A DNA stretch of 64,000 nucleotides from Ranitomeya imitator (taxonomy: Eukaryota). Within the stretch, counting starts at the first letter, position 1. Every line of letters starts with the position of its first letter. The stretch lies in assembly GCF_032444005.1 (NCBI RefSeq), contig NC_091283.1:629114001-629178000 (forward strand), read 5' to 3'. Below are positions 20,696 through 41,077 of the stretch, one piece after another. The notes beneath the pieces were generated by a model, which ran no database searches, was not told where the DNA came from, and saw only the letters and a list, made by a program, of their open reading frames with translations. Both the position numbers and the translations under genes were made by a program.

Positions 20696-20813
20696 CGCAA
20701 GACCCCTCTGCTCCCCCTCCCATGTACAAGACCCCTCTGCTCCTCCTCCCATGAACAAGATCCCTCTGCTTCCCCCACCCATGAGTAAGGCCCTTGTGCT
20801 TCCCCACCCATGA
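20696..20813 (+). repeat. 29-bp minisatellite, part 2
   Basis: Same unit; ends in CACCCATGA, the left TSD copy of the outer palindrome. Confidence 0.9.
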
Positions 20814-20984
20814 GGGACGTACTAAAAAGAATGAAGAAAAGGAATAAATAAAAAGAATGAACATAATAACTTATAGGTCCAAAGAGATGGAGAGAAGTTA
20901 TAGATTTCTTATGCATCTTGGATATGAACTGAACATAAATTATATGTAAAAAAAATTAGGAAATCAACATAGATCCCGTAAAAA

Positions 20985-21430
20985 AAGGTGTATATTATAT
21001 TCCCTGAGCTTTATAGGTGGGCAATGAACATGGAATATATGTAGATAATAGGAGAATGAACACAGATCCCATATAAACAGGTGTATAATATATTCCCTGA
21101 GCCTGATAGGTGGGGAATGAAGATGAAATATATGTAGATAATAGAAGAATGAACACATATCCCATATAAACAGGTGTATATTATATTCCCTGAGCTTTAT
21201 ATGTGGGGAATGAAGATGAAATATATGTAGAGAATAGGAGAATGAACACATATCCCATATAAACAGGTGTATATTATACTCCCTGATCCTGATTAGTGGG
21301 GAATGAACATGAAATATATGTAGAGAATAGGATAATGAACACATATCCCATATAAACAGGTGTATATTATATTCCCTGAGCCTGATAGGTGGGGAATGAA
21401 CATGAAATATATGTAGATAATAGAGGAATG
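20985..21430 (-). repeat. 93-bp satellite B, left of the young PLE insertion
   Basis: Unit TCCCTGAGCCTGATAGGTGGGGAATGAACATGAAATATATGTAGATAATAGGAGAATGAACACATATCCCATATAAACAGGTGTATATTATAT on the + strand. Confidence 0.95.
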
Positions 21431-21964
21431 GGACAAACGAAAAGAGAAAGGGTAGACTAAAAATAGTATGCACAACCCAAAATATAGAGACAATCGGTAG
21501 TACTATAAAGCAAAACACCTTTATTAAACACCTCAAAAAACATGTTAAAAACATTTAAAAACAAATGTACAAATCCCTATACCCATCATATCCCATAATA
21601 AATGACAATCCCATAATACAATAGGAAAACAGTAATATCCTACCCTAGATGCACCTAGTCACATATGCTCTCCTGCAAAAATGTGCCTATACAGGCCGCA
21701 AAGGACTCGACCACAATATGTCAGTATCCACTGCTAATAACCAAAAAATGAAACATCCATGCAATACATGGTCCTGAGATTGGAATGTGATAGCATGCTA
21801 TATAACAGCTGTGGATACAACCTGTCCTGCGTCAATTCTGGTATATGGAGATGCAGCAATGTCAAAGGGCACAGAGCACCACAAGGGTTAAATCCACATA
21901 GAGCCAGGGAACATAACAGCCCCAAAATGGCCCTGAGGTAGGAGAAGGATAAGGTGGGAGCGCA

Positions 21965-22002
21965 CCCCACGCGTATCGCTGCCTCCGCAGCTTCGTCAGG
22001 GG
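21965..22002 (-). ncRNA. Non-canonical hammerhead-like motif in pLTR (left copy)
   Basis: Mirror of 32322-32359. Confidence 0.5.
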
Positions 22003-23250
22003 AAGTGAAACTAAAGGTGCAACAGTGTGTGCTTAAATAATAAATCCAATAAGGTAAATTGCATACCGGTGTGGGAGAGAGAGAGAGAGGTAAAAGCCGG
22101 AAGACGCCGGCGACGCCATGACGACAGGAACACAATCATAATGAACGGCAATCCTAGAGCGTCCAAAGGGTCACATGCGCACGCGCAAACCGCGGTATTC
22201 CATAGGACCACGTTGCGCACGCGCCGTGCCAGCCGGCTAGATGGACACGTCATAGGACACAGGGCAAAGAGAAATGGAATAAAGCCCGAGGACCGGACTA
22301 AGCTAGCGAGGCCGGCTAGATGGACACATCATGGGACACAGAGCAGAGGGGGTGGGATAAGGACCAAAAAGCCAGAGAGGGGGGAAGGGAGGGGAAAAAA
22401 AAAAAAAAACACAACAGGTAAAAAGAGGGCAGAGTGTGCATGTTGCAGCAAGACACAGAGGCACAAGATATCCACCCGCAGAATGCCGGGAGATATCACA
22501 ATCATAGACATATACTAGTGATTAAAGGCAAAACCGCCAAAGGACACAAAAAGACAGGGCATATAAAGCCACCCAGAAAACCTGAAAGGGAGAAAGGAAT
22601 ATTATTATTGTTGGCAAGTGCACAGGTATAAGTGCACGTAAACACCTATACAGCAACCATATACAGTATGTAACAATATCAGGCAAAAAACACACACATA
22701 TATAAATATAAACAGACTGATGTCCCTTGAGTCCGTAAGTATATGTACGAGTATTCTCTCAATGCCGCTATGTAGACGTTTCCGGTCCCCAGCTTATAGT
22801 CCCATAGTCGATGAGGCCGACACCATCCAGATCTATACGAGAGAAAGCACTCTTCATCACAAGCCCCTTCCGACTTGCCAATCTCAAATGCGCATCCGAG
22901 CCCATAGTCCATAATAGGAGTTTGCCATAAAATCCGCATTGTAGCTGTGAGAGCAAAATCTCTTCTGCATAAGATGTCCTTCCATTTGCCATAATGGCAT
23001 GCCGCACATCCACCCTCCAGGGTCCACTTCATTATCTAATGTGTCAAAGACCTCTGCATCCATGTTGGTCCCCACAGTAAGCTTGTAATATCCATATCCC
23101 AATTTCCAGGGATGATCATCACCCTTTTGGGTGCGTCCTCAGCCTTCCTGAATGGAGACAAATGCAAAATTAGATATGGGCACCAAATCTGAAGGGAACC
23201 AAATCAGACGTCCCAGAAACTAAAAATACCCCAATGAATCTACGCGCCAA

Positions 23251-25776
23251 CTATCCTAGGAACCCCGTGAAGAGCAATTCCTCATTTAGGCCCATGGGTG
23301 CGACCGCCTGAAGATCGAAAATCCACCTGGACTCAGCACGCAAGAGATAGTTAGATATATTGCCACCCCTTTCGCCACAGGAAACCCTCTGTAACCCCAC
23401 AACTTGCAAATCAATGGGCGAACCCCTATGTTTCAGCAAGAAATGCGCCGCCACAGGAGTCAAGATTTTACCTTTGCCTTGGTCCGTAGCCGCCAGGCGT
23501 ATGGTTGATACGTGTTTTTGAAACCTCTTACGTAGTTCTTGGGATGTTTGCCCTACATAGATCATATTACAAGGGCAAATTAGCACATAAATAACATTTC
23601 TGCTCCTGCAGTTGATGTAAGCCTTTAACGCATGTCTGCTGGAGTTCGTGGGGTGTGTAAATATGTCCCGGGTGGGCGTCATAAAGGGGCAGACATTACA
23701 TTCCCCACAGGGGAATGATCCCTTGAGGACAATACCCCTATTAAGTTTGACCGTGGGCCTAGAAAAATGGCTCCTGGTCAACAACTGCCTCAGATTCGGG
23801 GCTCTTCTAGATGTCAATAACGGCCTATTGCTGATGACTTGTGTGGTTTGCATATCTGTTTGCAAGATCGGCCAATGTCTAGTGAGGATGTGTCTTACCT
23901 GCCCCCAGCTGTCATTATAGTCCGTGATGAACCTCGTCTGCGATTCTCGGGAACGACCCACAGGAATCAAAAGTGAGGCCTGATCATGTTGTCTTGCTTG
24001 CTGGAAAGCCGTGGCAACCACTCGTTTGGGATAACTCCTCTGTCTGAAGCGGTCCGTCAGATCCCGAGCTTGCATCAGAAAGTCTTGATCCCGAGTGCAA
24101 TTACGTCTAATGCGTAAAAATTGTCCCGTCGGGACGCCCACCTTCGTGTGCCAAGGGTGAAAACTGTTGAACTCCAAAAGAGCGTTAGTAGCAGTGGGCT
24201 TCCGGAAAAGGTCCGTGACCAGCTTGTTCCCTTGTACGAAAATTCTCAGATCCAGAAAGCTAGTCGAACTGTTGGAAATAGAGTGGGTTAAAAAGATATT
24301 ATGGGGGTTGGAATTGAGGCTGTGGATGAAATCAGTACAACCCTCCCTGCTGCCCGACCAAATAAAGAATAAGTCATCGATATAGCGATGCCAATTCCGG
24401 ACATGATGTTGATATGCCAGGGATGGGTACACAAACACCTCCTCCCACCAACCTAAGAAGATGTTTGCGTAGGTTGGTGCACATTTCGCCCCCATTGCCA
24501 CTCCAGCTGTCTGTAAATAAAATGTTCTGTCAAACAAAAAATAGTTGTGATGAAGAACAAATTTCAGCAGATCCAACAGAAAAGAATCATGCCCCCGATC
24601 TGAGTGTGACAGTTTGTCTAGGCAAAAAGTAACCGCATGCAGGCCATCACTATGCTTGATGTTGGAGTACAAAGACTCCACATCACAAGTTACCAGGTAG
24701 AATTCTCCCGGCAGTTCTATCCGTCCACAGACCTCAATAAAATGGGCAGAATCCCTTATAAAGGAGGGCAAGGCCGTGACTATTGGCTGGAAGAAGAAGT
24801 CCAAATACTCACTTGCCCGCTCGCAGATACTCCCAATGCTAGAAACAATCGGCCTTCCTGGTGGTTTCTTCTCGTCTTTATGTATCTTCGGCAACATATA
24901 AAATGTTGCCGTGACCGGATGTTCCACCCATAAATATTTTTTCTCTTGGGGCGAGATAATGCCGAAACTTAGCGTCCTGCAGAGTAAAGAGTCAAATTTA
25001 GACGCAAACACTGCCGTGGGATCTGAAGGTAATTTTTGATAGCATCTGGGGTTAGTGAGCTGTCTATTGGCCTCCTCTAAATATGCTTCAATTGACCACA
25101 GCACCACATTGCCCCCCTTATCCGCCTCTTTAATCACAAATTCCTTGTTGCTTTGTAAGTCCCGCAAGGCCCGTTTTTCGGCAAGATTAAGGTTAGAGGA
25201 TCTACCCACCTGTGTTGGCATTGCCAGAATGTCTCGTTTCACCAGCTCAAAGAATATCTTGATTGCGGGTACCAAGGAAAAGGAAGGCGTTTTAAGGGAT
25301 CTATTTCTGCCAGGGAACTTTCTTCTGGTACACCCTGATTCGTTCTCCTCCAGTAGGGCTAGTAGATCTTGAAAGGCTTGGCGCTCATCCTCAGGTATTG
25401 ATTGTAGAATATCCGGTTTTTTGTAGATAACCTGAAATGTGAGGTTCCTACAAAACAAATAGAGGTCCTTAACTAAAGTAAATTTGTCGGCCGTATGTGT
25501 GGGAGCAAAAGTTAAACCCCTCTTCAGGACGGCAAGTTCCACCGCAGTAAGTTCATATTTAGAAAGATTTATTACCTGGAGGGTGGATGTAGAGGCTCCA
25601 GAGGTCTGTTCCGTATCAGGGGGGGAGGAGGCTTGATTTATTTCCGTCTGGTTGAGTATTTGTGGGGGTAAGTCGGATTGTGGTCCCTGTGGCGCGTTAT
25701 GCGTTTTCTTGTTCCCCCTCCGTCTCCTCCCACGCCTGGTCCGTGGTCTACCTCGCTTCCGGTGGAAGATAAAAAA
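23251..25776 (-). CDS. PLE reverse transcriptase + GIY-YIG endonuclease (left copy)
   Basis: Frame is open from the slippery site at 25770-76 to the stop at 23251; translation identical to the right copy. Confidence 0.93.
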   Translation of the reverse strand, partial: FFIFHRKRGRPRTRRGRRRRGNKKTHNAPQGPQSDLPPQILNQTEINQASSPPDTEQTSGASTSTLQVINLSKYELTAVELAVLKRGLTFAPTHTADKFTLVKDLYLFCRNLTFQVIYKKPDILQSIPEDERQAFQDLLALLEENESGCTRRKFPGRNRSLKTPSFSLVPAIKIFFELVKRDILAMPTQVGRSSNLNLAEKRALRDLQSNKEFVIKEADKGGNVVLWSIEAYLEEANRQLTNPRCYQKLPSDPTAVFASKFDSLLCRTLSFGIISPQEKKYLWVEHPVTATFYMLPKIHKDEKKPPGRPIVSSIGSICERASEYLDFFFQPIVTALPSFIRDSAHFIEVCGRIELPGEFYLVTCDVESLYSNIKHSDGLHAVTFCLDKLSHSDRGHDSFLLDLLKFVLHHNYFLFDRTFYLQTAGVAMGAKCAPTYANIFLGWWEEVFVYPSLAYQHHVRNWHRYIDDLFFIWSGSREGCTDFIHSLNSNPHNIFLTHSISNSSTSFLDLRIFVQGNKLVTDLFRKPTATNALLEFNSFHPWHTKVGVPTGQFLRIRRNCTRDQDFLMQARDLTDRFRQRSYPKRVVATAFQQARQHDQASLLIPVGRSRESQTRFITDYNDSWGQVRHILTRHWPILQTDMQTTQVISNRPLLTSRRAPNLRQLLTRSHFSRPTVKLNRGIVLKGSFPCGECNVCPFMTPTRDIFTHPTNSSRHALKAYINCRSRNVIYVLICPCNMIYVGQTSQELRKRFQKHVSTIRLAATDQGKGKILTPVAAHFLLKHRGSPIDLQVVGLQRVSCGERGGNISNYLLRAESRWIFDLQAVAPMGLNEELLFTGFLG

Positions 25777-26402
25777 TCATCACTAGAGCTTTCTTCACCA
25801 CGAGGTAGAGAGGTGGATATTGTAGTTGCTGTCACGGAACCATGGCCATAGGTTCTAGTACGGCGTGGGTTACCCCTGTGCGTCCATCTATACACTGCAT
25901 TTTGCTCAAAATCAGTCCTGTCCCTAAGAAGTTTTTTACGCTTCCTGCTCGTCACCTCTACCTCATATTTGTCCAAGGTCTCTTTAAGTGTGGTCTTGAA
26001 GGTATGCACCTGTGTCCCTTCAAATGTGTTCAATTTGGTTTCCAATTCTTTAATGGAGGTCTTGGTCGCCGTAAACAGGTCTCTGTCATGCTCCAATAAT
26101 AGGTTGATAAGTATATTTGAACAGCGTGTAAGACCCTGTTCCCAAATCTGTTAAAATGATCCTGAGGGTTCCCAAGCTGGAAATATGGAGACCCTCAAAC
26201 CACGAGGTATCAAACCTAATTTCAAATACTCTTCTAGACTCCTCATGTTCCACCAGAGTCTAATCCCTGTCTTATGTGCCCTCATCAATTCTGAGCACAC
26301 ATTGGAAAAACCTGATTCTGACTCAACAGCAACCGATCCAGAAAGATCAAACACATTGGATGGTTTGGCTAGCCAGGCCGCCTCCCTAGCCTCCCAGTCC
26401 AT
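25638..26402 (-). pseudogene. PLE ORF1 with in-frame stop at 26151-53 (left copy)
   Basis: Mirror of 27922-28686. Confidence 0.7.
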
Positions 26403-26455
26403 CACCCTAAACCCGAGTATGCAAAAACCAATATGGAAAAAAAAAAAAAAAAAAT

Positions 26456-26486
<31 letters not shown>

Positions 26487-27161
26487 TACAAAATTACGCA
26501 AAAATATGCGTGTGCTGCTCCCAAAGAACACCCCGGGACACGGGGCAACAACTAGCACAAGAGTAAAGATAGAAAGGGGCGCACCAATATATAATGTCAC
26601 AGTCACCATCAAGGGGTGCAATACTTAGTCTATAAATAGAACAGGACAAACGAAAAGAGAAAGGGTAGACTAAAAATAGTATGCACAACCCAAAATATAG
26701 AGACAATCGGTAGTACTATAAAGCAAAACACCTTTATTAAACACCTCAAAAAACATGTTAAAAACATTTAAAAACAAATGTACAAATCCCTATACCCATC
26801 ATATCCCATAATAAATGACAATCCCATAATACAATAGGAAAACAGTAATATCCTACCCTAGATGCACCTAGTCACATATGCTCTCCTGCAAAAATGTGCC
26901 TATACAGGCCGCAAAGGACTCGACCACAATATGTCAGTATCCACTGCTAATATCCATGCAATACATGGTCCTGAGATTGGAATGTGATAGCATGCTATAT
27001 AACAGCTGTGGATACAACCTGTCCTGCGTCAATTCTGGTATATGGAGATGCAGCAATGTCAAAGGGCACAGAGCACCACAAGGGTTAAATCCACATAGAG
27101 CCAGGGAACATAACAGCCCCAAAATGGCCCTGAGGTAGGAGAAGGATAAGGTGGGAGCGCA

Positions 27162-27199
27162 CCCCACGCGTATCGCTGCCTCCGCAGCTTCGTCAGGGG
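27162..27199 (-). ncRNA. Non-canonical hammerhead-like motif in the central spacer (5' pLTR of left copy)
   Basis: Identical to 21965-22002. Confidence 0.5.
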
Positions 27200-27837
27200 A
27201 AGTGAAACTAAAGGTGCAACAGTGTGTGCTTAAATAATAAATCCAATAAGGTAAATTGCATACCGGTGTGGGAGAGAGAGAGAGAGGTAAAAGCCGGAAG
27301 ACGCCGGCGACGCCATGACGACAGGAACACAATCATAATGAACGGCAATCCTAGAGCGTCCAAAGGGTCACATGCGCACATGGATACTGACATATTGTGG
27401 TCGAGTCCTTTGCGGCCTGTATAGGCACATTTTTGCAGGAGAGCATATGTGACTAGGTGCATCTAGGGTAGGATATTACTGTTTTCCTATTGTATTATGG
27501 GATTGTCATTTATTATGGGATATGATGGGTATAGGGATTTGTACATTTGTTTTTAAATGTTTTTAACATGTTTTTTGAGGTGTTTAATAAAGGTGTTTTG
27601 CTTTATAGTACTACCGATTGTCTCTATATTTTGGGTTGTGCATACTATTTTTAGTCTACCCTTTCTCTTTTCGTTTGTCCTGTTCTATTTATAGACTAAG
27701 TATTGCACCCCTTGATGGTGACTGTGACATTATATATTGGTGCGCCCCTTTCTATCTTTACTCTTGTGCTAGTTGTTGCCCCGTGTCCCGGGGTGTTCTT
27801 TGGGAGCAGCACACGCATATTTTTGCGTAATTTTGTA

Positions 27838-27868
<31 letters not shown>

Positions 27869-27921
27869 ATTTTTTTTTTTTTTTTTTCCATATTGGTTTT
27901 TGCATACTCGGGTTTAGGGTG

Positions 27922-28686
27922 ATGGACTGGGAGGCTAGGGAGGCGGCCTGGCTAGCCAAACCATCCAATGTGTTTGATCTTTCTGGATCGGTTGCTGTTG
28001 AGTCAGAATCAGGTTTTTCCAATGTGTGCTCAGAATTGATGAGGGCACATAAGACAGGGATTAGACTCTGGTGGAACATGAGGAGTCTAGAAGAGTATTT
28101 GAAATTAGGTTTGATACCTCGTGGTTTGAGGGTCTCCATATTTCCAGCTTGGGAACCCTCAGGATCATTTTAACAGATTTGGGAACAGGGTCTTACACGC
28201 TGTTCAAATATACTTATCAACCTATTATTGGAGCATGACAGAGACCTGTTTACGGCGACCAAGACCTCCATTAAAGAATTGGAAACCAAATTGAACACAT
28301 TTGAAGGGACACAGGTGCATACCTTCAAGACCACACTTAAAGAGACCTTGGACAAATATGAGGTAGAGGTGACGAGCAGGAAGCGTAAAAAACTTCTTAG
28401 GGACAGGACTGATTTTGAGCAAAATGCAGTGTATAGATGGACGCACAGGGGTAACCCACGCCGTACTAGAACCTATGGCCATGGTTCCGTGACAGCAACT
28501 ACAATATCCACCTCTCTACCTCGTGGTGAAGAAAGCTCTAGTGATGATTTTTTATCTTCCACCGGAAGCGAGGTAGACCACGGACCAGGCGTGGGAGGAG
28601 ACGGAGGGGGAACAAGAAAACGCATAACGCGCCACAGGGACCACAATCCGACTTACCCCCACAAATACTCAACCAGACGGAAATAA
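27922..28686 (+). pseudogene. PLE ORF1 / N-terminal region with in-frame TAA at 28171-73
   Basis: MDWEAREAAWLA...PAWEPSGSF*QIWEQGLTRCSNILINLLLEHDRDL...STRRK*; track ORFs 27703-28173 and 28228-28686 are in the same frame. Confidence 0.7.
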
Positions 28687-31073
28687 ATCAAGCCTCCTCC
28701 CCCCCTGATACGGAACAGACCTCTGGAGCCTCTACATCCACCCTCCAGGTAATAAATCTTTCTAAATATGAACTTACTGCGGTGGAACTTGCCGTCCTGA
28801 AGAGGGGTTTAACTTTTGCTCCCACACATACGGCCGACAAATTTACTTTAGTTAAGGACCTCTATTTGTTTTGTAGGAACCTCACATTTCAGGTTATCTA
28901 CAAAAAACCGGATATTCTACAATCAATACCTGAGGATGAGCGCCAAGCCTTTCAAGATCTACTAGCCCTACTGGAGGAGAACGAATCAGGGTGTACCAGA
29001 AGAAAGTTCCCTGGCAGAAATAGATCCCTTAAAACGCCTTCCTTTTCCTTGGTACCCGCAATCAAGATATTCTTTGAGCTGGTGAAACGAGACATTCTGG
29101 CAATGCCAACACAGGTGGGTAGATCCTCTAACCTTAATCTTGCCGAAAAACGGGCCTTGCGGGACTTACAAAGCAACAAGGAATTTGTGATTAAAGAGGC
29201 GGATAAGGGGGGCAATGTGGTGCTGTGGTCAATTGAAGCATATTTAGAGGAGGCCAATAGACAGCTCACTAACCCCAGATGCTATCAAAAATTACCTTCA
29301 GATCCCACGGCAGTGTTTGCGTCTAAATTTGACTCTTTACTCTGCAGGACGCTAAGTTTCGGCATTATCTCGCCCCAAGAGAAAAAATATTTATGGGTGG
29401 AACATCCGGTCACGGCAACATTTTATATGTTGCCGAAGATACATAAAGACGAGAAGAAACCACCAGGAAGGCCGATTGTTTCTAGCATTGGGAGTATCTG
29501 CGAGCGGGCAAGTGAGTATTTGGACTTCTTCTTCCAGCCAATAGTCACGGCCTTGCCCTCCTTTATAAGGGATTCTGCCCATTTTATTGAGGTCTGTGGA
29601 CGGATAGAACTGCCGGGAGAATTCTACCTGGTAACTTGTGATGTGGAGTCTTTGTACTCCAACATCAAGCATAGTGATGGCCTGCATGCGGTTACTTTTT
29701 GCCTAGACAAACTGTCACACTCAGATCGGGGGCATGATTCTTTTCTGTTGGATCTGCTGAAATTTGTTCTTCATCACAACTATTTTTTGTTTGACAGAAC
29801 ATTTTATTTACAGACAGCTGGAGTGGCAATGGGGGCGAAATGTGCACCAACCTACGCAAACATCTTCTTAGGTTGGTGGGAGGAGGTGTTTGTGTACCCA
29901 TCCCTGGCATATCAACATCATGTCCGGAATTGGCATCGCTATATCGATGACTTATTCTTTATTTGGTCGGGCAGCAGGGAGGGTTGTACTGATTTCATCC
30001 ACAGCCTCAATTCCAACCCCCATAATATCTTTTTAACCCACTCTATTTCCAACAGTTCGACTAGCTTTCTGGATCTGAGAATTTTCGTACAAGGGAACAA
30101 GCTGGTCACGGACCTTTTCCGGAAGCCCACTGCTACTAACGCTCTTTTGGAGTTCAACAGTTTTCACCCTTGGCACACGAAGGTGGGCGTCCCGACGGGA
30201 CAATTTTTACGCATTAGACGTAATTGCACTCGGGATCAAGACTTTCTGATGCAAGCTCGGGATCTGACGGACCGCTTCAGACAGAGGAGTTATCCCAAAC
30301 GAGTGGTTGCCACGGCTTTCCAGCAAGCAAGACAACATGATCAGGCCTCACTTTTGATTCCTGTGGGTCGTTCCCGAGAATCGCAGACGAGGTTCATCAC
30401 GGACTATAATGACAGCTGGGGGCAGGTAAGACACATCCTCACTAGACATTGGCCGATCTTGCAAACAGATATGCAAACCACACAAGTCATCAGCAATAGG
30501 CCGTTATTGACATCTAGAAGAGCCCCGAATCTGAGGCAGTTGTTGACCAGGAGCCATTTTTCTAGGCCCACGGTCAAACTTAATAGGGGTATTGTCCTCA
30601 AGGGATCATTCCCCTGTGGGGAATGTAATGTCTGCCCCTTTATGACGCCCACCCGGGACATATTTACACACCCCACGAACTCCAGCAGACATGCGTTAAA
30701 GGCTTACATCAACTGCAGGAGCAGAAATGTTATTTATGTGCTAATTTGCCCTTGTAATATGATCTATGTAGGGCAAACATCCCAAGAACTACGTAAGAGG
30801 TTTCAAAAACACGTATCAACCATACGCCTGGCGGCTACGGACCAAGGCAAAGGTAAAATCTTGACTCCTGTGGCGGCGCATTTCTTGCTGAAACATAGGG
30901 GTTCGCCCATTGATTTGCAAGTTGTGGGGTTACAGAGGGTTTCCTGTGGCGAAAGGGGTGGCAATATATCTAACTATCTCTTGCGTGCTGAGTCCAGGTG
31001 GATTTTCGATCTTCAGGCGGTCGCACCCATGGGCCTAAATGAGGAATTGCTCTTCACGGGGTTCCTAGGATAG
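28548..31073 (+). CDS. PLE reverse transcriptase + GIY-YIG endonuclease (right copy)
   Basis: VINLS...KRGLTFAPT N-terminus; RT motifs LPKIHK, GRPIVS, DVESLYSNI, GVAMGAKCAPTYAN and RYIDD; Cys-rich linker CGECNVC; GIY-YIG NVIYVLICPCNMIYVGQT...RFQKH. Uninterrupted. Confidence 0.95.
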   Translation, partial: FFIFHRKRGRPRTRRGRRRRGNKKTHNAPQGPQSDLPPQILNQTEINQASSPPDTEQTSGASTSTLQVINLSKYELTAVELAVLKRGLTFAPTHTADKFTLVKDLYLFCRNLTFQVIYKKPDILQSIPEDERQAFQDLLALLEENESGCTRRKFPGRNRSLKTPSFSLVPAIKIFFELVKRDILAMPTQVGRSSNLNLAEKRALRDLQSNKEFVIKEADKGGNVVLWSIEAYLEEANRQLTNPRCYQKLPSDPTAVFASKFDSLLCRTLSFGIISPQEKKYLWVEHPVTATFYMLPKIHKDEKKPPGRPIVSSIGSICERASEYLDFFFQPIVTALPSFIRDSAHFIEVCGRIELPGEFYLVTCDVESLYSNIKHSDGLHAVTFCLDKLSHSDRGHDSFLLDLLKFVLHHNYFLFDRTFYLQTAGVAMGAKCAPTYANIFLGWWEEVFVYPSLAYQHHVRNWHRYIDDLFFIWSGSREGCTDFIHSLNSNPHNIFLTHSISNSSTSFLDLRIFVQGNKLVTDLFRKPTATNALLEFNSFHPWHTKVGVPTGQFLRIRRNCTRDQDFLMQARDLTDRFRQRSYPKRVVATAFQQARQHDQASLLIPVGRSRESQTRFITDYNDSWGQVRHILTRHWPILQTDMQTTQVISNRPLLTSRRAPNLRQLLTRSHFSRPTVKLNRGIVLKGSFPCGECNVCPFMTPTRDIFTHPTNSSRHALKAYINCRSRNVIYVLICPCNMIYVGQTSQELRKRFQKHVSTIRLAATDQGKGKILTPVAAHFLLKHRGSPIDLQVVGLQRVSCGERGGNISNYLLRAESRWIFDLQAVAPMGLNEELLFTGFLG

Positions 31074-32321
31074 TTGGCGCGTAGATTCATTGGGGTATTT
31101 TTAGTTTCTGGGACGTCTGATTTGGTTCCCTTCAGATTTGGTGCCCATATCTAATTTTGCATTTGTCTCCATTCAGGAAGGCTGAGGACGCACCCAAAAG
31201 GGTGATGATCATCCCTGGAAATTGGGATATGGATATTACAAGCTTACTGTGGGGACCAACATGGATGCAGAGGTCTTTGACACATTAGATAATGAAGTGG
31301 ACCCTGGAGGGTGGATGTGCGGCATGCCATTATGGCAAATGGAAGGACATCTTATGCAGAAGAGATTTTGCTCTCACAGCTACAATGCGGATTTTATGGC
31401 AAACTCCTATTATGGACTATGGGCTCGGATGCGCATTTGAGATTGGCAAGTCGGAAGGGGCTTGTGATGAAGAGTGCTTTCTCTCGTATAGATCTGGATG
31501 GTGTCGGCCTCATCGACTATGGGACTATAAGCTGGGGACCGGAAACGTCTACATAGCGGCATTGAGAGAATACTCGTACATATACTTACGGACTCAAGGG
31601 ACATCAGTCTGTTTATATTTATATATGTGTGTGTTTTTTGCCTGATATTGTTACATACTGTATATGGTTGCTGTATAGGTGTTTACGTGCACTTATACCT
31701 GTGCACTTGCCAACAATAATAATATTCCTTTCTCCCTTTCAGGTTTTCTGGGTGGCTTTATATGCCCTGTCTTTTTGTGTCCTTTGGCGGTTTTGCCTTT
31801 AATCACTAGTATATGTCTATGATTGTGATATCTCCCGGCATTCTGCGGGTGGATATCTTGTGCCTCTGTGTCTTGCTGCAACATGCACACTCTGCCCTCT
31901 TTTTACCTGTTGTGTTTTTTTTTTTTTTTCCCCTCCCTTCCCCCCTCTCTGGCTTTTTGGTCCTTATCCCACCCCCTCTGCTCTGTGTCCCATGATGTGT
32001 CCATCTAGCCGGCCTCGCTAGCTTAGTCCGGTCCTCGGGCTTTATTCCATTTCTCTTTGCCCTGTGTCCTATGACGTGTCCATCTAGCCGGCTGGCACGG
32101 CGCGTGCGCAACGTGGTCCTATGGAATACCGCGGTTTGCGCGTGCGCATGTGACCCTTTGGACGCTCTAGGATTGCCGTTCATTATGATTGTGTTCCTGT
32201 CGTCATGGCGTCGCCGGCGTCTTCCGGCTTTTACCTCTCTCTCTCTCTCCCACACCGGTATGCAATTTACCTTATTGGATTTATTATTTAAGCACACACT
32301 GTTGCACCTTTAGTTTCACTT

Positions 32322-32359
32322 CCCCTGACGAAGCTGCGGAGGCAGCGATACGCGTGGGG
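32322..32359 (+). ncRNA. Non-canonical hammerhead-like motif in the 3' pLTR
   Basis: CCC-CUGACGA-A-GCUGC(GGAG)GCAGC-GAUA-CGCG-UG-GGG: hammerhead geometry, but GAUA replaces GAAA and G sits at the cleavage position. Confidence 0.55.
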
Positions 32360-32977
32360 TGCGCTCCCACCTTATCCTTCTCCTACCTCAGGGCCATTTT
32401 GGGGCTGTTATGTTCCCTGGCTCTATGTGGATTTAACCCTTGTGGTGCTCTGTGCCCTTTGACATTGCTGCATCTCCATATACCAGAATTGACGCAGGAC
32501 AGGTTGTATCCACAGCTGTTATATAGCATGCTATCACATTCCAATCTCAGGACCATGTATTGCATGGATGTTTCATTTTTTGGTTATTAGCAGTGGATAC
32601 TGACATATTGTGGTCGAGTCCTTTGCGGCCTGTATAGGCACATTTTTGCAGGAGAGCATATGTGACTAGGTGCATCTAGGGTAGGATATTACTGTTTTCC
32701 TATTGTATTATGGGATTGTCATTTATTATGGGATATGATGGGTATAGGGATTTGTACATTTGTTTTTAAATGTTTTTAACATGTTTTTTGAGGTGTTTAA
32801 TAAAGGTGTTTTGCTTTATAGTACTACCGATTGTCTCTATATTTTGGGTTGTGCATACTATTTTTAGTCTACCCTTTCTCTTTTCGTTTGTCCTGTTCTA
32901 TTTATAGACTAAGTATTGCACCCCTTGATGGTGACTGTGACATTATATATTGGTGCGCCCCTTTCTATCTTTACTCT

Positions 32978-35353
32978 GATAATAGAGGAATGAACACATA
33001 TTTCATATAAACAGTTGTATATTATATTCCCTGAGCCTGATAGGTGGGGAATGAACATGAAATATATGTAGAGAATAGGAGAATGAACACATATCCCATA
33101 AAAACAGGTGTATATTATATTCCTTGAGCTTTATATGTGGGGAATGAAGATGAAATATATGTAGAGAATAGAAGAATGAACACATATCCCATATAAACAG
33201 GTGTATATTATATTCCCTGAGCTTTATATGTGGGGAATGAAGATGAAATATATGTAGAGAATAGGAGAATGAACACATATCCCATATAAACAGGTGTATA
33301 ATATATTCCCTGAGCCTGATAGGTGGGGAATGAACATGAAATATATGTAAATAATAGGAGAATGAACACATATCCCATATAAACAGGTGTATATTATATT
33401 CCCTGAGCCTGATAGGTGGGGAATGAACATGAAATATATGTAAATAATAGGAGAATGAACACATATCCCATATGAACAGGTGTATATTATATTCCCTGAG
33501 CCTGATAGGTGGGGAATGAACATGAAATATATGTAAATAATAGGAGAATGAACACATATCCCATATGAACAGGTGTATATTATATTCCCTGAGCCTGATA
33601 GGTGGGGAATGAAGATGAAATATATGTAGGTAATAGGAGAATGAACACATATCCCATATAAACAGGTGTATATTATATTCCCTGAGCCTGATAGGTGGGG
33701 AATGAACATGAAATATATGTAAATAATAGGAGAATGAACACATATCCCATATGAACAGGTGTATATTATATTCCCTGAGCCTGATAGGTGGGGAATGAAG
33801 ATGAAATATATGTAGGTAATAGGAGAATGAACACATATCCCATATAAACAGGTGTATATTATATTCCCTGAGCCTGATAGGTGGGGAATGAACATAGAAT
33901 ATATGTAGAGAATAGAGGAATGAACACATAACCCATATACACAGGTGTATATTATATTCCCTGAGCCTGATAGGTGGGGAATAAACATGAAATATGTGTA
34001 GAGAATAGAGGAATGAACACATATCCCATATAAACAGGTGTATATTATATTCCCTGATCTTGATAGGTGGGGAATAAACATGAAATATATGTAGAGAATA
34101 GGAGAATGAACACATATCCCATATAAACAGGTGTATATTATATTCCCTGAGCCTGATAGGTGGGGAATGAAGATGAAATATATGTAGATAATAGGAGAAT
34201 GAACACATATCCCATATAAACAGGTGTATATTATATTCCCTGAGCTTTATAGGTGGGGAATGAACATGAAATATATGTAGAGAATAGAGGAATGAACACA
34301 TATCCCATATGAACAGGTGTATATTATATTCCCTGAGCCTGATAGGTGGGGAATGAACATGAAATATATGTAGATAATAGAGGAATGAACACATATCCCA
34401 TATAAACAGGTGTATATTATATTCCCTGAGCTTTATAGGTGGGGAATGAACATGAAATATATGTAGAGAATAGAGGAATGAACACATATCCCATATGAAC
34501 AGGTGTAGATTATATTCCCTGAGCCTGATAGGTGGGGAATGAACATGAAATATATGTAGATAATAGAGGAATGAACACATATTTCATATAAACAGTTGTA
34601 TATTATATTCCCTGAGCCTGATAGGTGGGGAATGAACATGAAATATATGTAGAGAATAGAGGAATGAACACATATCCCATATAAACAGGTGTATATTATA
34701 TTCCCTGATCTTGATAGGTGGGGAATAAACATGAAATATATGTAGAGAATAGGAGAATGAACACATATCCCATATAAACAGGTGTATATTATATTCCCTG
34801 AGCCTGATAGGTGGGGAATGAAGATGAAATATATGTAGATAATAGGAGAATGAACACATATCCCATATAAACAGGTGTATATTATATTCCCTGAGCTTTA
34901 TAGGTGGGGAATGAACATGAAATATATGTAGAGAATAGAGGAATGAACACATATCCCATATGAACAGGTGTATATTATATTCCCTGAGCCTGATAGGTGG
35001 GGAATGAACATGAAATATATGTAGATAATAGAGGAATGAACACATATCCCATATAAACAGGTGTATATTATATTCCCTGAGCTTTATAGGTGGGGAATGA
35101 ACATGAAATATATGTAGAGAATAGAGGAATGAACACATATCCCATATGAACAGGTGTAGATTATATTCCCTGAGCCTGATAGGTGGGGAATGAACATGAA
35201 ATATATGTAGATAATAGAGGAATGAACACATATTTCATATAAACAGTTGTATATTATATTCCCTGAGCCTGATAGGTGGGGAATGAACATGAAATATATG
35301 TAGAGAATAGGAGAATGAACACATATCCCATAAAAACAGGTGTATATTATATT
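32978..35353 (-). repeat. 93-bp satellite B, continuation right of the young PLE
   Basis: Same unit and orientation as 20985-21430. Confidence 0.96.
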
Positions 35354-36570
35354 CGAAAATAAAAATCATAGAGTTCATTCATAGAGTTATGCACATGAAG
35401 TTATACTAAGGTAACAAATCTCCAGTTAGTGATTCATGGGTTACCTTATATAGCAGCGATTAGGGAGTAATCCAGTGTTCGATCTCTAGATAGTCCCGGA
35501 GAAGGGAGGGGGTTTCGCAGAAACGTTAGTGGTTGGAGTTCAGGAAGTCTTCTGGAGCGCTGTCCCGGCCGATGACAGATGCCCTCTTGCTTCTCTGGTA
35601 GGCCCTTGCGCAAGCATGGAGCACTCGTGGTAGAAGCCAGCAGTGCGCGGTGAGCGTGCAGGACCTAGCGTGATGTCAGAAATCACGTGACCAGGCACGT
35701 GACAATGTACAGAGCTCTATGTGGACTAATTCCTAAGTGTTTTGGAAAGCTCGGATTCCTTCGTCAGGGATGGTCCATTGATTGACGGAGCTGTCTTTTA
35801 TCTTCAGAGTGTGTCATGTGACATAGAATTTAGTCAGTGAAGGATAAGAGTTCTACTTCACTTTTGAGACCTCTAGGTATTAGAGTGTCTAATTCAAATA
35901 TCCATCTATTCTCTGCAAGGGACATTTGTTTAACCCCTTTCTACCATCAGATGCACTATGCCATTTGTGTGACCTGGGACCTAATTCCCATGCACGGGAT
36001 AGTACGTCACCACCAATCAGCTGTGCTCACGGAGGAAGCGCGGCCGGGTGTCAGCTGATTATCACAGCAGACATCCGGCACTATGTGCCAGGAGCGGTTA
36101 CGGACCGTTCCCGGCACTCTAACCCCAGAAACACTGCGATCCAACAAGATCGCAGCATTGCGGTGGCATAGGGAAGCATCGCGCAGGGAGGGGGCTCCCA
36201 ATGTGTTTCCTTGGGACTCTCGGAACAACACAATGTGATTGCGTTGTTCCGAGGGTCTCCTCCCTGCGGGCCCCGGAACCAAGATGGCAGCGGGGTCTTT
36301 TTGGGTCCTGTATTTTAATATTCCTTAAAATATGGCAATTTGCATTGTATTGGAAAATGATAGCGATATCTTCCCTAATGTTAGGGTCTCTCATTTTTTT
36401 TTTTATTTTGGAGTAAATTTATCCTCGGTATGTTTTCCACTAGTTCTTTTGTTTGCATCAATTGACGTTTGTCGTACCCTTTGTTGACAAATTTCTGTGT
36501 CAGAAAATCAGCCTCCTTATTAAAGTCGTGGGTCTTAGAACAATTCCTATGTGCCCGTATATATTGACTC
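35354..36570 (-). mobile_element. Old PLE remnant, left arm (3' pLTR plus RT fragment)
   Basis: 35354-35930 mirrors 37540-38099; RT C-terminal remnant INFLDLNIF...TYHKPTD in ORF 36381-36752 (that part extends into the spacer). Confidence 0.8.
35934..36310 (+). mobile_element. Truncated left end of the piggyBac-type element family seen at 55470
   Basis: TTAA|CCCCTT start; clearly similar to 55470-55850; replaces part of the left arm. Confidence 0.7.
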
Positions 36571-36879
36571 TTTGGGATGTTAATAAGACAGCTGGGGAGA
36601 TGGCAACTGTCCATTGAGGTGTAATTGTTACAATCAGTTGGTTTATGGTATGTTTGGGTCTGAATAGTTCCTTCCTCTACAAAAATGTTCAGATCCAGAA
36701 AATTAATTGATTCTGTACTCATGGTTGCCGAAAAGTTTTTTAAAAATATCATTTTTATTTATTTAAGCAATAAAATCAGTTAAAAGTTTAGGTCCACCTG
36801 ACCAGATGAAAATTATATTGTTAATAAAACGATTCCAGAGGACCAGGTTCGCCGGTAGTTCACACCCAAATAGTCAATA

Positions 36880-38099
36880 CATACAGGCACATAGGAATTG
36901 TTCTAAGAGCAACGACTTTAATAAGGAGGCTGATTTTCTGACACAGAAATTTATCAACAAAGGGTAAGACAAACGTCAATTGATGCAAACAAAAGAACTA
37001 GTGGAAAACATACCGAGGATAAATTTACTCCAAAATAAAAAAAAATGAGAGACCCTAACATTAGGGTAGATATCCCTATCATTTTCCAATACAATGCAAA
37101 TTGCCATATTTTAAGAAATATAGTGGAAAAACATTGGAGTGTCCTAAAAGAAGACAAAATCATGGGAGATCGTTTTTCAGCTCATCCCAAATGTATTTAC
37201 AAGAAAGCTATCACCAATCCCTCAATAAGTCTTCTTTCACGCTTCTTACAAGTCCGTAGAGGATTTTACCCCTGCCACAAGTGTAAAACATACAAAACAT
37301 TGCAAACAGGAAAACAATTTAATATTTCAAACGGAACCACAGAATTCACCATTAGGGATTGCATTGCATGCAATACTTCAGTAGTTATTTATTCATTAAA
37401 ATGCCCTTGCGGTAAACATTATGTGGGACATACCAAGCGCCCACTTAATGTTAGAATCAGTGAGCACTTGCGCACTGGTCTCCATATTGTTAAAAGGGAC
37501 TGGAAAAAAGGAAAATACATTAAACAAATGTCCCTTGCAGAGAATAGATGGATATTTGAACTAGACACTCTAATACCTAGAGGTCTCAAAAGTGAAGTAG
37601 AACTCTTAGCCTTCACTGACTAAATTCTATGTCACATGACACACTCTGAAAATAAAAGACAGCTCCGTCAATCAATGAACCATCCCTGACGAAGGAATCC
37701 GAGCTTTCCAAAACACTTAGGAATTAGCCCACATAGAGCTCTGTACATTGTCACGTGCCTGGTCACGTGATTTCTGACATCACGCTAGGTCCTGCACGCT
37801 CACCGCGCGCTGCCGGCTTCTAACACGAGTGCTCCATGCTTGCGCAAGGGCCTACCAGAGAAGCAAGAGGGCATCTGTCACCGGCCGGGATAGCGCTCCA
37901 GAAGACTTCCTGAACTCCAACCACTAACGTTTCTCCGGAACCCTCTCCCTCCTCCAGGACTATCTAGAGATCGAACACTGGATTATTCTCTCATCTCTGC
38001 TATATGAGGTAACCCATGAATCACTAACTGGAGCTTTGTTACCTTAGTATAACTTCATGTGCATAACTCTATGAATGAACTCTATGATTTTTATTTTCG
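36880..38099 (+). mobile_element. Old PLE remnant, right arm with decayed GIY-YIG domain and 3' pLTR
   Basis: ORF 37045-37623 contains CHKCKT and VIYSLKCPCGKHYVGHTKRPLNVRISEH; decayed hammerhead CUGACGA-AGGAA..UUCC-AAAA at 37683-37722, mirrored at 35731-35770. Confidence 0.82.
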
Positions 38100-40900
38100 A
38101 ATATAATATACACCTGTCTTTATGGGATGTGTTTCATTCTCCAATTATCTACATATATTTCTTCTTCATTCCCCACCTATCAGGCTCAGGGAATATAATA
38201 TACACCTGTTTATATGGGATATGTGTTCATTCCCCTATTATCTACATATATTCCATGTTCATTCCCCACCTATCAGGCTCAGGGAATATAATATACACCT
38301 GTTTATATGGGATATGTGTTCATTCCTCTATTATCTACATCTATTTCATGTTCATTCCCCACCTATAAAGCTCAGGGAATATAATATACACCTGTTTATA
38401 TGGCATATGTGTTCATTCCTCTATTCTCTACATATATTTCATGTTCATTCCCCACCTATCACGCTCAGGGAATATAATATACACCTGTTTATATGGGATA
38501 TGTGTTCATTCTCCTATTATCTACATATATTTCATCTTCATTCCCCACCTATCAGGCTCAGGGAATATAATATACACCTGTTTATATGGGATATGTGTTC
38601 ATTCTCCTATTATCTACATATATTCCATGTTCATTCCCCACCTATCAGGCTCAGGGAATATAATATACCCCTGTTTATATGGGATATGTGTTCATTCTCC
38701 TGTTATCTACATATATTTCATGTTCATTCCCCACCTATCAGGCACAGGAAATATAATATACACCTGTTTATATGGGATATGTGTTCATTCCCCTATTATC
38801 TACATATATTCCATGTTCATTCCCCACCTATAATGCTCTGGGAATATAATATACACCTGTTTATATGGGATATGTGTTCATTCTCCTATTCTCTACATAT
38901 ATTTAATCTTCATTCCCCACCTATCAGGCTCAGGGAATATAATATACACCTGTTTATATGGGATATGTGTTCATTCTCCTATTATCTACATATATTTCAT
39001 GTTTATTCCCCACCTATCAGGCTCAGGGAATATAATATACACCTGTTTATATGGGATATGTGTTCATTCCTCTATTATCTACATATATTTCATGTTCATT
39101 CCCCACCTATAAAGCTCAGGGAATATAATATACACCTGTTTATATGGGATATGTGTTCATTCCTCTATTATCTACATATATTTCATGTTCATTCCCCACC
39201 TATAAAGCTCAGGGAATATAATATACACCTGTTTATATGGGATATGTGTTCATTCCTCTATTATCTACACATGTTTCATGTTCATTCCCTACCTATCAGG
39301 CTCAGGGAATATAATATACACCTGTTTATATGAGATATGTGTTCATTCCTCTATTCTCTACATATATTTCATGTTCATTCCCCACCTATAAAGCTCAGGG
39401 AATATAATATACACCTGTTTATATGGCATATGTGTTCATTCCTCTATTCTCTACATATATTTCATGTTCATTCCCCACCTATCAGGCTCAGGGAATATAA
39501 TATACACCTGTTTATATGGGATATGTGTTCATTCCCCTATTATCTACATATATTCCATGTTCATTCCCCACCTATAATGCTCTGGGAATATAATATACAC
39601 CTGTTTATATGGGATATGTGTTCATTCTCCTATTATCTACATATATTTCATCTTCATTCCCCACCTATCAGGCTCAGGGAATATAATATACACCTGTTTA
39701 TATGGGATATTTGTTCATTCTCCTATTCTCTACATATATTCCATGTTCATTCCCCACCTATCAGGCTCAGGGAATATAATATACACCTGTTTATATGGGA
39801 TATGTGTTCATTCTCCTGTTATCTACATATATTTCATGTTCATTCCCCACCTATCAGGCACAGGAAATATAATATACACCTGTTTATATGGGATATGTGT
39901 TCATTCCCCTATTATCTACATATATTCCATGTTCATTCCCCACCTATAATGCTCTGGGAATATAATATACACCTGTTTATATGGGATATGTGTTCATTCT
40001 CCTATTCTCTACATATATTTCATGTTTATTCCCCACCTATCAGGCTCAGGGAATATAATATACACCTGTTTATATGGGATATGTGTTCATTCCTCTATTA
40101 TCTACATATATTTCATGTTCATTCCCCACCTATAAAGCTCAGGGAATATAATATACACCTGTTTATATGGGATATGTGTTCATTCCTCTATTATCTACAT
40201 ATATTTCATGTTCATTCCCCACCTATAAAGCTCAGGGAATATAATATACACCTGTTTATATGGGATATGTGTTCATTCCTCTATTATCTACACATATTTC
40301 ATGTTCATTCCCTACCTATCAGGCTCAGGGAATATAATATACACCTGTTTATATGAGATATGTGTTCATTCCTCTATTCTCTACATATATTTCATGTTCA
40401 TTCCCCACCTATTAGGCTCAGGGAATATAATATACACCTGTTTATATGGGATATGTGTTCATTATCCTATTCTCTACATATATTTCATGTTCATTCCCCA
40501 CCTATCAGGCACAGGGAATATAATATACACCTGCTTATATGGGATATGTGTTCATTCCTCTATTCTCTACATATATTTCATGTTCATTCCCCACCTATTA
40601 GGCTCAGGGAATATAATATACACCTGTTTATATGGGATATGTGTTCATTCTCCTATTATCTACATATATTCCATGTTCATTCCCCACCTATCAGGCTCAG
40701 GGAATATAATATACACCTGTTTATATGGGATATGTGTTCATTCTCCTATTATCTACATATATTCCATGTTCATTCCCCACCTATCAGGCTCAGGGAATAT
40801 AATATACACCTGTTAATATGGGATATGTGTTCATTCTCCTATTCTCTACATGTATTTCATGTTCATTCCCCACCTATAAAGCTCAGGGAATATAATATAT
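38100..40900 (+). repeat. 93-bp satellite B in inverted orientation, about 30 units
   Basis: Reverse complement of the 32978-35353 unit. Confidence 0.96.
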
Positions 40901-41077
40901 ACCTTTTTTACGGGATCTATGTTGATATCCTAATTTTTTTTTTACATATAATTTATGTTCAGTTCATATCCAAGATGCAGAAGAAATCTATAACTTCTCT
41001 CCATCTCTTTGGACCTATAAGTTATTATGTTCATTCTTTTTATTTATTCCTTTTCTTCATTCTTTTTAGTACGTCCC

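Follow-up and report, generated by a model that had tools for sequence, protein, structure and literature searches.

The older, 8.7-kb component of a nested palindrome in Ranitomeya imitator is probably a single insertion of a Penelope-like element (PLE) lineage that carries a satellite, satellite B, within the element itself. The palindrome, whose existence was confirmed, spans 20,264 bp of a 64,000-nucleotide stretch of DNA (the window, whose numbering is used throughout), and the older element is what is left once the young Penelope dimer at 21431-32977 is set aside. The whole of it was inserted as one head-to-head unit, as PLEs do, and with this single integration about 30 satellite units in each arm reached a new locus. 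The features of the locus are as follows.

20805-20813: left TSD copy CACCCATGA, 9 bp, in a 29-bp host minisatellite (20697-20813)
20814-20956, minus strand: left terminal segment, 3' end of the left copy; RNA-sense end ...AGTACGTCCC; 99.2% identical to the right tail
20957-21430, minus strand: satellite B, outer part of the left arm; 93-bp unit, 5.1 units; its final 15 bp form the young insert's TSD
21431-32977: young head-to-head PLE dimer, inserted in the left satellite array
21431-27379, minus strand: young left copy, RT/GIY-YIG ORF at 25542-23251
27381-32977, plus strand: young right copy, RT/GIY-YIG ORF at 28782-31073
32978-35354, minus strand: satellite B, inner part of the left arm; 25.5 units; the first 15 bp are the second copy of the young TSD
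35355-35832, minus strand: left 3' UTR (the pLTR of the original prediction), 96.2% identical to its right counterpart
35833-36858, minus strand: left PLE coding remnant, tblastn E 1.5e-17 and 2e-17
35946-35833, minus strand: left EN C-terminus, within the left PLE remnant
36837-36465, minus strand: left RT, residues about 384-507, tblastn E 1.5e-17
36584-36858, minus strand: asymmetric centre, without a partner in the right arm in the arm alignment
36859-37623, plus strand: right PLE coding remnant, tblastn E 9e-14 against the young PLE
37624-38098, plus strand: right 3' UTR, with a hammerhead-like CTGACGA at 37686-37692
38099-40923, plus strand: satellite B, right arm, 30.4 units
40924-41077, plus strand: right terminal segment, 3' end of the right copy
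41078-41086: right TSD copy CACCCATGA, after which the minisatellite resumes, up to 42940
41409-41616: paralogous higher-order minisatellite copy, serving as an internal empty site

Setting aside the young insert left two inverted arms of 4,208 and 4,219 bp around the 275-bp asymmetric centre, in agreement with the two mirror arms of ~4.2 kb that had been predicted. From the centre outwards, each arm consists of a 5'-truncated RT/GIY-YIG remnant, a 475-bp 3' UTR, 30.5 satellite units and a terminal segment of ~150 bp. This order of remnant, UTR and satellite had been foreseen, as had the ~30 units per arm (5.1 + 25.5 were found on the left and 30.4 on the right); the unique tail of ~180 bp that was to complete the arm is instead a segment of about 143-154 bp present in many copies. 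The PLE/satellite junctions at 35354/35355 and 38098/38099 are exact mirror images of each other, again as anticipated, and the satellite-bearing arms have the same length to the base (2,978 bp). The mirror relation holds for architecture and length, not for the order of the satellite variants, which are not colinear. The old arms differ by 3.5-5.9%, and some events are specific to one arm: an insertion nested in it and flanked by a TSD of its own, a replacement of 383 bp, and higher-order repeats that are not alike. Outwards, both sides run into the same minisatellite, in the same orientation and with a TSD.

The symmetry axis falls within PLE coding sequence. With the nested young element's intact 763-aa ORF as reference, we scored the old remnants by tblastn and found two truncated PLE copies at the centre, placed 5' to 5' so that their 3' ends face outward. 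The truncation points are unequal, lying at about residue 380 on the left and further 3', at about residue 470, on the right. On the left, an unrelated GC-rich repeat of 383 bp (35934-36316) stands in for about 378 nt of the EN region. The right remnant retains a 192-codon open ORF (37045-37623) that spans the Cys motif and the GIY-YIG domain, and its EN part (37078-37614) matches the intact ORF at E 9e-14. The older element thus contains both the RT and the EN of an EN+ PLE insertion, in copies that are remnants rather than intact, and has an inverted, 5'-truncated partner copy inside one TSD, as PLE insertions do. Both UTR/satellite junctions run on from the ORF stop. A representative library contained 1,128 homologues of the old right remnant. 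Among five of the long ones, scanned with Pfam, P0015 scored above the cut-off for GIY-YIG and below it for RVT_1 (26.2 bits), and P0016 scored above the cut-off for RVT_1. The protein libraries contained no close relative of the old ORF, with a best identity of 40-46%.

After removal of one TSD copy, the joined flanks of the element were compared with the stretch that begins at 41409: 203 of the first 208 bases agree, without a break at the junction, and this paralogue contains a single copy of CACCCATGA. The paralogous minisatellite stretch therefore represents the empty site and proves an exact TSD of 9 bp. The original prediction had placed one 9-13-bp duplication around the whole and supposed an empty allele with a single copy of it; the duplication is now fixed at 9 bp, and the single copy is seen in a paralogous empty site. 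The 9-mer occurs elsewhere in adjacent pairs of minisatellite units. Because both arms end at the same base, ...TTTTTAGTACGTCCC, with the one exact TSD directly next to it, the element arose by a single head-to-head integration. The predicted head-to-head pair thus stands, on the 5'-to-5' centre, the outward 3' ends and the single TSD.

The tail had been taken to be unique. Half of its sampled words, however, were present in the runs of seven organisms, very small runs included, and contigs from two other organisms (16 from X27 and 14 from X35) carry the tail with unrelated flanks ending exactly before 20814. These flanks, of 170-180 nt, are mutually unrelated (agreement 0.41); the comparison covered positions 19300-22300 with short contigs, whose depth does not equate to copy number. 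Since the tail is multi-copy and meets unrelated flanks at the same end base, it is the conserved terminus of a dispersed mobile unit, shared by copies with many different flanks in other species. In contigs of organisms A and E it is joined to the satellite, and its inner part is itself degenerate satellite B (score 37, versus 14.4 +/- 2.8 for shuffles). Judging from these sequences, the satellite appears to be internal to a dispersed mobile unit that ends in the tail, rather than a product of one-off read-through into neighbouring DNA. Four letters of the tail (20895-20897 and 20937) are common to both arms and are minority variants among the family contigs of three species; the arms therefore share one template lineage. 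No poly(A) signal or tail was found at the element's end.

Satellite B is abundant in three or more of the organisms compared. When the young insert and one copy of its TSD were excised, the 93-bp period was restored and the two arrays aligned as one ungapped block of 2,777 bp. They are not in-register copies today. Within the left inner array, an exact repeat of 663 bp recurs 7 units further on (33997-34659 and 34648-35310), and the right array has exact repeats of its own, of 288 and 235 bp, displaced by 11 and 12 units. The non-colinear order of the variants in the two arms is not predicted by simple copying of one RNA. In a contig of another organism-A sample, satellite B adjoins the last 30 nt of the 3' UTR, and the base and phase of the junction are those of 35354/35355; this contig could derive from the present locus if the library is reduced-representation. 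Of the central 2.85 kb, runs of low coverage contained only some tenth, and so the PLE body is much rarer than the satellite and the tail. The majority of copies with a tail may lack coding sequence or be truncated, and no second full copy, with ORF, satellite and tail, was seen in the material compared.

Both old 3' UTRs contain a hammerhead-like CTGACGA motif (35761-35767 on the left, 37686-37692 on the right). An Rfam search returned no hammerhead, even at E<=5, and none in satellite B on either strand. The motif CCCTGACGAAG is common to the old and young elements and likewise has no Rfam hammerhead match; the old motif has AAAAC versus GAAAG in the motif of a mini-dimer at 63479, and a block of ~41 nt surrounding the young motif occurs at high copy number in each of the four runs. 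With the array left out, the motif lies about 566 nt from the 3' end in the old element versus 568 nt in the young one, a single and weak comparison. The arms of the young dimer (21431-26943 and 27381-32893) are 100% complementary, and its TSD is 15 bp, GATAATAGAGGAATG, at 21416-21430 and 32978-32992. Its two 3' ends differ by 84 nt, the left being the shorter, and its 763-aa ORF gave weak Pfam matches to RVT_1 and GIY-YIG, both below the cut-offs.

Work with purified PLE protein has shown that it cleaves and extends both strands and that reverse transcription starts at defined internal sites, whatever the RNA's 3' end (PMC11167929); inverted 5'-truncated copies are typical of PLEs (PMC8557442). 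We propose that the mobile unit would comprise the RT/GIY-YIG ORF, the ~475-nt 3' UTR, an array of 93-bp satellite B and a terminal segment of ~150 nt ending in ...GTACGTCCC. The element's endonuclease would cut the 29-bp minisatellite with a break staggered by 9 bp, and both DNA ends would then prime reverse transcription at the same defined start, the tail end of the RNA. The two cDNAs would halt at different points inside the RT region and be joined 5' to 5', leaving two outward-facing arms within one TSD. The satellite would travel within the element, presumably in most copies of the family, and 5'-truncated or fold-back copies would leave satellite-plus-tail arrays at new loci. Later, the arms would have diverged by about 3.5% and the arrays turned over internally, a GC-rich repeat would have taken the place of part of the left EN region, and a young, unrelated PLE dimer would have entered the left array. 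The idea that retrotransposition is a route for seeding inverted satellite arrays is thus supported, and more generally than was first proposed.

The PLE could instead have lain upstream of a separate retroelement made of satellite B and tail, with read-through and a start of reverse transcription at that element's 3' signal producing a fusion in one lineage that was inserted head to head. Such a fusion would suit the far wider occurrence of tail and satellite than of the PLE body, the initiation of PLE reverse transcription at an internal signal (PMC11167929) and the wealth of non-autonomous PLE derivatives in frogs (bioRxiv 10.64898/2026.07.22.740005). We consider it unlikely, however, because the UTR enters the array without trace of a second element's 5' end or TSD, and because the satellite/3' UTR junction recurs in the contig of another sample, in a small run without depth in non-repeat bins, which suggests more than one copy. 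One-off 3' transduction, in which a PLE transcript ran ~3 kb past its own 3' end through a genomic array into unique flank and was integrated twice, was the origin first put forward. This process is established for LINE-1, and ORF, UTR, satellite and tail are indeed contiguous in both arms inside one TSD. We nevertheless find it quite improbable: the supposed flank is a conserved family terminus, multi-copy in the runs of seven organisms and bordered by unrelated sequence at an identical end base, it is degenerate satellite rather than foreign DNA, and the end of the element bears no poly(A) signal or tail. A source locus sought in protein and metagenome libraries gave no match.

Long inverted arms of tandem repeats with a 9-bp TSD also recall FB/Tetris-type elements (PMC4079207), and could point to an origin at the DNA level, either as a fold-back DNA transposon with a PLE passenger or by inverted duplication of a single-armed insertion during replication or repair. 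That origin is highly improbable given an axis inside PLE coding sequence between copies truncated at different residues, UTR/satellite junctions that are mirror-identical and continuous with the ORF stop, and the failure to find a transposase; inverted duplication would in addition require its breakpoint to fall precisely on the family terminus, and no TSD is expected from it. The 5.5-kb arms of the nested young dimer, at 100% identity, show the pattern that fold-back chimeras can mimic, and a chimeric read or a mis-joined repeat might be invoked for the whole palindrome. The old arms, however, differ by 3.5-5.9% with arm-specific events, their centre is asymmetric, and both outer ends join the same minisatellite in one orientation with a TSD, and we regard an assembly artefact as extremely improbable.

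The older element resembles head-to-head PLE insertions in its RT with C-terminal GIY-YIG, in its 5'-truncated copies set 5' to 5' with 3' ends outward, one TSD and a defined start of reverse transcription, and in its tandem-repeat target, here a minisatellite, the bias in the literature being towards microsatellites (PMC8557442; mechanism in vitro, PMC11167929). One PLE end may carry an optional 3' tail extension of 30-40 bp, reflecting two reverse-transcription start sites (PMC8557442); the old element is without this asymmetry, which amounts to 84 nt in the young one. Unlike known PLE insertions, the older element has in each arm 2.8 kb of 93-bp satellite units that separate the 3' UTR from the terminus, and no hammerhead detectable by Rfam. 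LINE-1 3' transduction moves downstream sequence to a new locus by retrotransposition, whereas the cargo in the older element is something other than unique flank, has a conserved family terminus as its end, with neither poly(A) signal nor poly(A) tail, and was integrated on both strands. SVA, a composite retrotransposon with an internal VNTR that is mobilised in trans by LINE-1, is likewise a retroelement spread by retrotransposition with a long tandem array inside it, one that grows and shrinks; here, in contrast, the enzyme class is PLE, poly(A) is lacking, integration is fold-back and the array is also a major genome satellite. Hikosaka and Kawahara reportedly described in 2004 that Xstir-type tandem repeats ride on MITEs in Xenopus, likewise a short tandem repeat of a frog dispersed by a mobile element, but that carrier derives from a DNA transposon and forms no fold-back cDNA dimer.

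Tetris and FB of Drosophila have inverted arms of tandem repeats that also exist as satellite, and a short TSD, but are DNA transposons with repeat-built terminal inverted repeats (PMC4079207), whereas the arms here contain PLE coding remnants. The 30.5 units per arm and the 9-bp TSD are a structural resemblance only to fold-back transposons; in place of a transposon middle with transposase, the arms contain PLE EN/RT remnants and UTR, and at the axis two unequally truncated cDNA copies meet 5' to 5'. Non-LTR retrozymes and hammerhead satellites are also tandem non-coding repeats tied to PLE 3' regions, in amphibians, and non-autonomous spread by PLE enzymes has been proposed for retrozymes (bioRxiv 10.64898/2026.07.22.740005; PMC7229834). 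Each retrozyme unit has a type I hammerhead, whereas the 93-bp satellite B has no match on either strand and lies downstream of a single hammerhead-like motif.

By what means satellite arrays come to occupy new chromosomal sites has long been asked. The carriers known so far are mostly DNA transposons, such as MITEs, Helitrons and fold-back elements, and PLEs are the least understood class of retroelements. At this locus, a PLE would carry a kilobase-scale array between its UTR and its priming site, and two-strand priming would deposit an inverted pair. Since PLE integration is often 5'-truncated and both strands are primed, each jump would deposit either a bare satellite-plus-tail array or a mirror pair. 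We tentatively raise the possibility, which we hold to be less probable than its alternative, that a poison-frog Penelope lineage with satellite B inside its 3' region, upstream of the RT start, has been the main engine of the satellite's spread through several species and a systematic source of long palindromes. The locus itself is a dated series of old insertion, array turnover and nested young insertion, which lends itself to the study of satellite turnover at constant length. If the arrangement is general, it would account for the satellite blocks that lie interspersed in the giant genomes of frogs, supply ready-made long palindromes as potential fragile or recombinogenic sites, and allow the internal-initiation model of PLE reverse transcription to be tested in nature.

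Self-comparison and tandem-repeat finding were used to map the locus around the old element, a head-to-head pair of Penelope-like element (PLE) copies at 20814-41077 that measures ~8.7 kb without the younger PLE pair nested in its left satellite B array. Each arm reads outward as a remnant of the reverse transcriptase (RT) and GIY-YIG endonuclease coding region, 3' UTR, satellite B and a terminal segment, referred to here as the tail.

Organization of the locus (window positions)
18542-19375, 20697-20813 and 41078-42940: host minisatellite, 29-bp unit
20814-20956: left terminal segment (tail)
to 21430: satellite B, 93-bp unit, 5.1 units, outer left arm
21431-32977: young insert, 11,547 bp
to 35354: satellite B, 25.5 units, inner left arm
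35355-38098: non-satellite centre, 2.7 kb
38099-40923: satellite B, 30.4 units in opposite orientation, right arm
to 41077: right terminal segment, inverted

Both arms of the old element stop at the same base. Reading inward, each end begins GGGACGTAC..., and the tail terminus reads ...GUACGUCCC. The 9-mer CACCCATGA is found at 20805-20813 and again at 41078-41086. Because the host is itself a tandem repeat, a repeated 9-mer is by itself weak evidence for a target-site duplication (TSD); this 9-mer is a minority minisatellite variant that is found elsewhere in adjacent unit pairs. We then joined the flanks, omitting one copy of the 9-mer, and compared them with a paralogous stretch of the minisatellite (41409 onward). 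The two agree at 203 of the first 208 bases across the junction, and the match takes in rare variants on both sides of it. Together, these two observations make the evidence for a TSD strong. The paralogous stretch therefore acts as an internal empty site and shows a clean 9-bp TSD with no other loss. The flanking duplication of the original prediction, put at 9-13 bp, does surround the whole element, and the empty site sets its size at exactly 9 bp. This clean TSD establishes that the old element arose by a single integration event; it is very unlikely that the structure is an assembly chimera or was duplicated in inverted orientation afterwards. The host minisatellite at 41409-42940 is organized at a higher order: units with the CACCCATGA variant come repeatedly in pairs, and two of the paralogous blocks lead into the same non-repeat sequence (...ACAAACCAAGTAAACAATGAAGGA...). 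About 120 bp to the left of the old element, the same minisatellite is split by an unrelated 1.3-kb insertion (19376-20696), parts of which are high-copy in two species.

Using the young ORF as a query, we found two matches on opposite strands of the old centre.

PLE remnants in the old centre
36837-36465, minus strand: RT, residues ~384-507 (E = 1.5e-17)
37078-37614, plus strand: Cys motif and GIY-YIG, residues 538-761 (E = 9e-14)

The old copies point away from each other. The left copy reaches ~residue 380 and the right begins near residue 470, and because of this unequal truncation 275 bp (36584-36858) have no partner in the other arm. In the left arm, ~378 nt of endonuclease coding sequence are replaced by an unrelated GC-rich repeat (35934-36316), which is nearly equal in length to the stretch it replaced. 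This ~375-bp repeat contains an internal inverted repeat and has a second, 78% identical copy at 55457-55831. The right remnant retains an open 192-codon frame (37045-37623), for which an exhaustive search of representative proteins returned 1,128 homologues. The best of these are PLE relatives with 40-46% identity, and no intact member of the old PLE family was found among the matches. A separate protein homology search gave no match to the 192-residue ORF. Five long homologues out of the 1,128 were scanned against Pfam: P0015 has GIY-YIG above the cut-off and RVT_1 below it, P0016 has RVT_1 above the cut-off, and P0001, P0006 and P0044 had no Pfam match.

In the young insert, two copies of one element stand head to head. 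The element has an intact ORF of 763 codons, whose RVT_1 and GIY-YIG Pfam matches are weak and each below the cut-off. Complementarity between the arms is 100% over 5.5 kb, and the insert lies between two copies of a duplicated 15-bp satellite sequence. Deletion of the insert and one copy of the duplication restores the 93-bp period, and the arrays then align in one ungapped block of 2,777 bp. The 3' ends of the two young copies differ by 84 nt (21431 versus 32893-32977), the left copy terminating in ...CGTTTGTCC and the right copy extending to ...CTTTACTCT. The shorter end adjoins a different flank in a contig from another sample, and the 84-nt difference fits the two start sites described for PLE reverse transcription and the resulting "tail". 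The old and young elements share no nucleotide similarity in their 3' regions. Within the young pLTR, a ~41-nt block around CTGACGA (21966-22006, also at 27163-27203 and 32318-32358) is the sole high-copy part of that region in all four runs compared, and contigs break on both sides of it. It presumably represents a hammerhead core conserved across many PLE families. Rfam searches of the whole window at the gathering threshold, and of 20600-41300 at E ≤ 5, found no hammerhead or other relevant RNA, and the bare CTGANGA motif is not above chance (34 found, 28.8 expected). Predicted folds of the 3'-terminal RNA improve only slightly on those of shuffled sequences (z ~ -2.2) and were given no weight.

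We asked where the tail and satellite B are found in other organisms, using sequencing runs of coded organisms. With a 152-bp tail query, half of the sampled words were present in runs of seven organisms, some of these runs comprising only 9-140 million letters. The contigs of four runs were aligned to 19300-22300, the read evidence being short Logan contigs. Satellite B contigs are very numerous in organisms A, D and E, where contig depth is not a copy number, and contigs joining the tail to satellite B were found in organisms A and E. In runs X27 (16 contigs) and X35 (14 contigs), the match begins exactly at 20814 and proceeds inward, and outside this position the contigs carry 170-180 nt that are mutually discordant (agreement 0.41). 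Therefore, position 20814 is the terminus of a dispersed unit located at many different sites in other species, and the tail is not the unique sequence it was originally taken to be. The inner tail scores 37 against satellite B (shuffles, 14.4 ± 2.8) and, judged from this sequence likeness, looks like a decayed array edge rather than foreign flank. In another sample of organism A, one contig exits satellite B in the phase of 35354/35355, and its next 30 letters are those of the old 3' UTR. This run is small, and within 19300-22300 its contigs hit repeat-rich bins only, which suggests that the UTR/satellite junction is probably multi-copy too. Metagenome scans with the satellite B consensus and the tail end gave no match.

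These termini bear on how satellite B came to lie in the element. The original prediction was that a PLE transcript had read past its 3' end through a satellite array. Because the tail ends in a conserved terminus that adjoins many different flanks, satellite B is inside the mobile unit, upstream of the priming site, and simple read-through is not upheld. A hybrid history is possible, in which the transcript read into a resident satellite-tail element and the 3' signal of that element was then used. In the PLE sense, one frame of satellite B is interrupted by only two stops over 2.8 kb (38122-41466), with same-frame ORFs of 403, 339 and 368 codons. A protein homology search found no homologues of the 403-codon frame, and its openness is probably a by-product of the unit length (93 = 31 × 3).

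Over all unique parts, the two old arms differ at 35 of 1,004 positions (3.5%).

Differences between the old arms
Tail: 1 of 133
UTR plus ORF end: 23 of 613
RT part: 11 of 258
Satellite B arrays in register: 5.9%, with transitions about equal to transversions

At four tail positions, both arms carry a letter that only a minority of the family contigs from three species have, and thus both derive from one template lineage. The distance from the UTR junction to the end is exactly 2,978 bp in each arm. The arms are therefore mirror images in length, as first described, but their satellite variants are not colinear: array identity is 94.1% in register and 93.7% off register, and aligning the arrays unit by unit gave no better result than aligning them after the order of units had been shuffled (p 0.1-0.4). 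On these grounds we rejected the idea that the arrays are still mirror copies. Each array has higher-order repeats of its own: in the left array, 663 bp recur exactly 7 units further on, and in the right array, 288 bp and 235 bp recur exactly after 11 and 12 units. Gene conversion leaves length unchanged, and turnover of this kind would fit the equal arms; that separate gains and losses should arrive at equal lengths would have a chance of a few percent. We also discarded rolling-circle copying of a 93-nt circle, since both arrays have pre-existing variant types and higher-order patterns in common.

Satellite A, also with a 93-bp unit, forms an inverted pair of ~61 and ~51 units (3264-9040 and 12936-17686). 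Its likeness to satellite B is weak (shared CTGATAGG; score 16 versus 9.6 ± 1.8 for shuffles), and mirrored degenerate units lie at the inner array ends. The pair lacks both a common outer tail and a TSD, and was therefore rejected as a second clean instance. Between its arrays lies a Tc1/mariner-like element whose inverted ends are 48 bp long (TACAGTCATGGCCAAAAG...; 9703-11257). The centre of the pair holds a 505-bp palindrome of 79% identity (11811-12304), in which the CTGATGA motifs at 12038 and 12078 are opposed; this palindrome may be a decayed miniature fold-back element.

The anatomy of the old element fits well with the published PLE mechanism. Purified PLE protein cleaves and extends both target strands, and reverse transcription begins at defined internal RNA sites (PMC11167929). 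PLEs typically have inverted 5'-truncated partner copies and favour microsatellites (tandem repeats) as targets (PMC8557442). Here, a break staggered by 9 bp would have been made in the host minisatellite, two cDNAs would have started at the same tail base, and these would have been truncated unequally and then joined 5' to 5'. The young dimer follows the same plan with a 15-bp TSD. Fold-back PLE insertions are already known. Helitrons and MITEs are among the carriers of tandem repeats that also form satellites. The mobile element Tetris (PMC4079207) is another known case, and PLE-related hammerhead tandem repeats are known as well (bioRxiv 10.64898/2026.07.22.740005). The literature searched contained no description of a PLE with a short-unit satellite inside it: for a catfish satellite whose unit is 2.7 kb, the wording goes no further than "related to Penelope", and the poison-frog genome paper (PMC11152451) mentions neither satellites nor Penelope. 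The value of the finding would be greater if a genome-wide census confirmed that this PLE lineage has spread satellite B.
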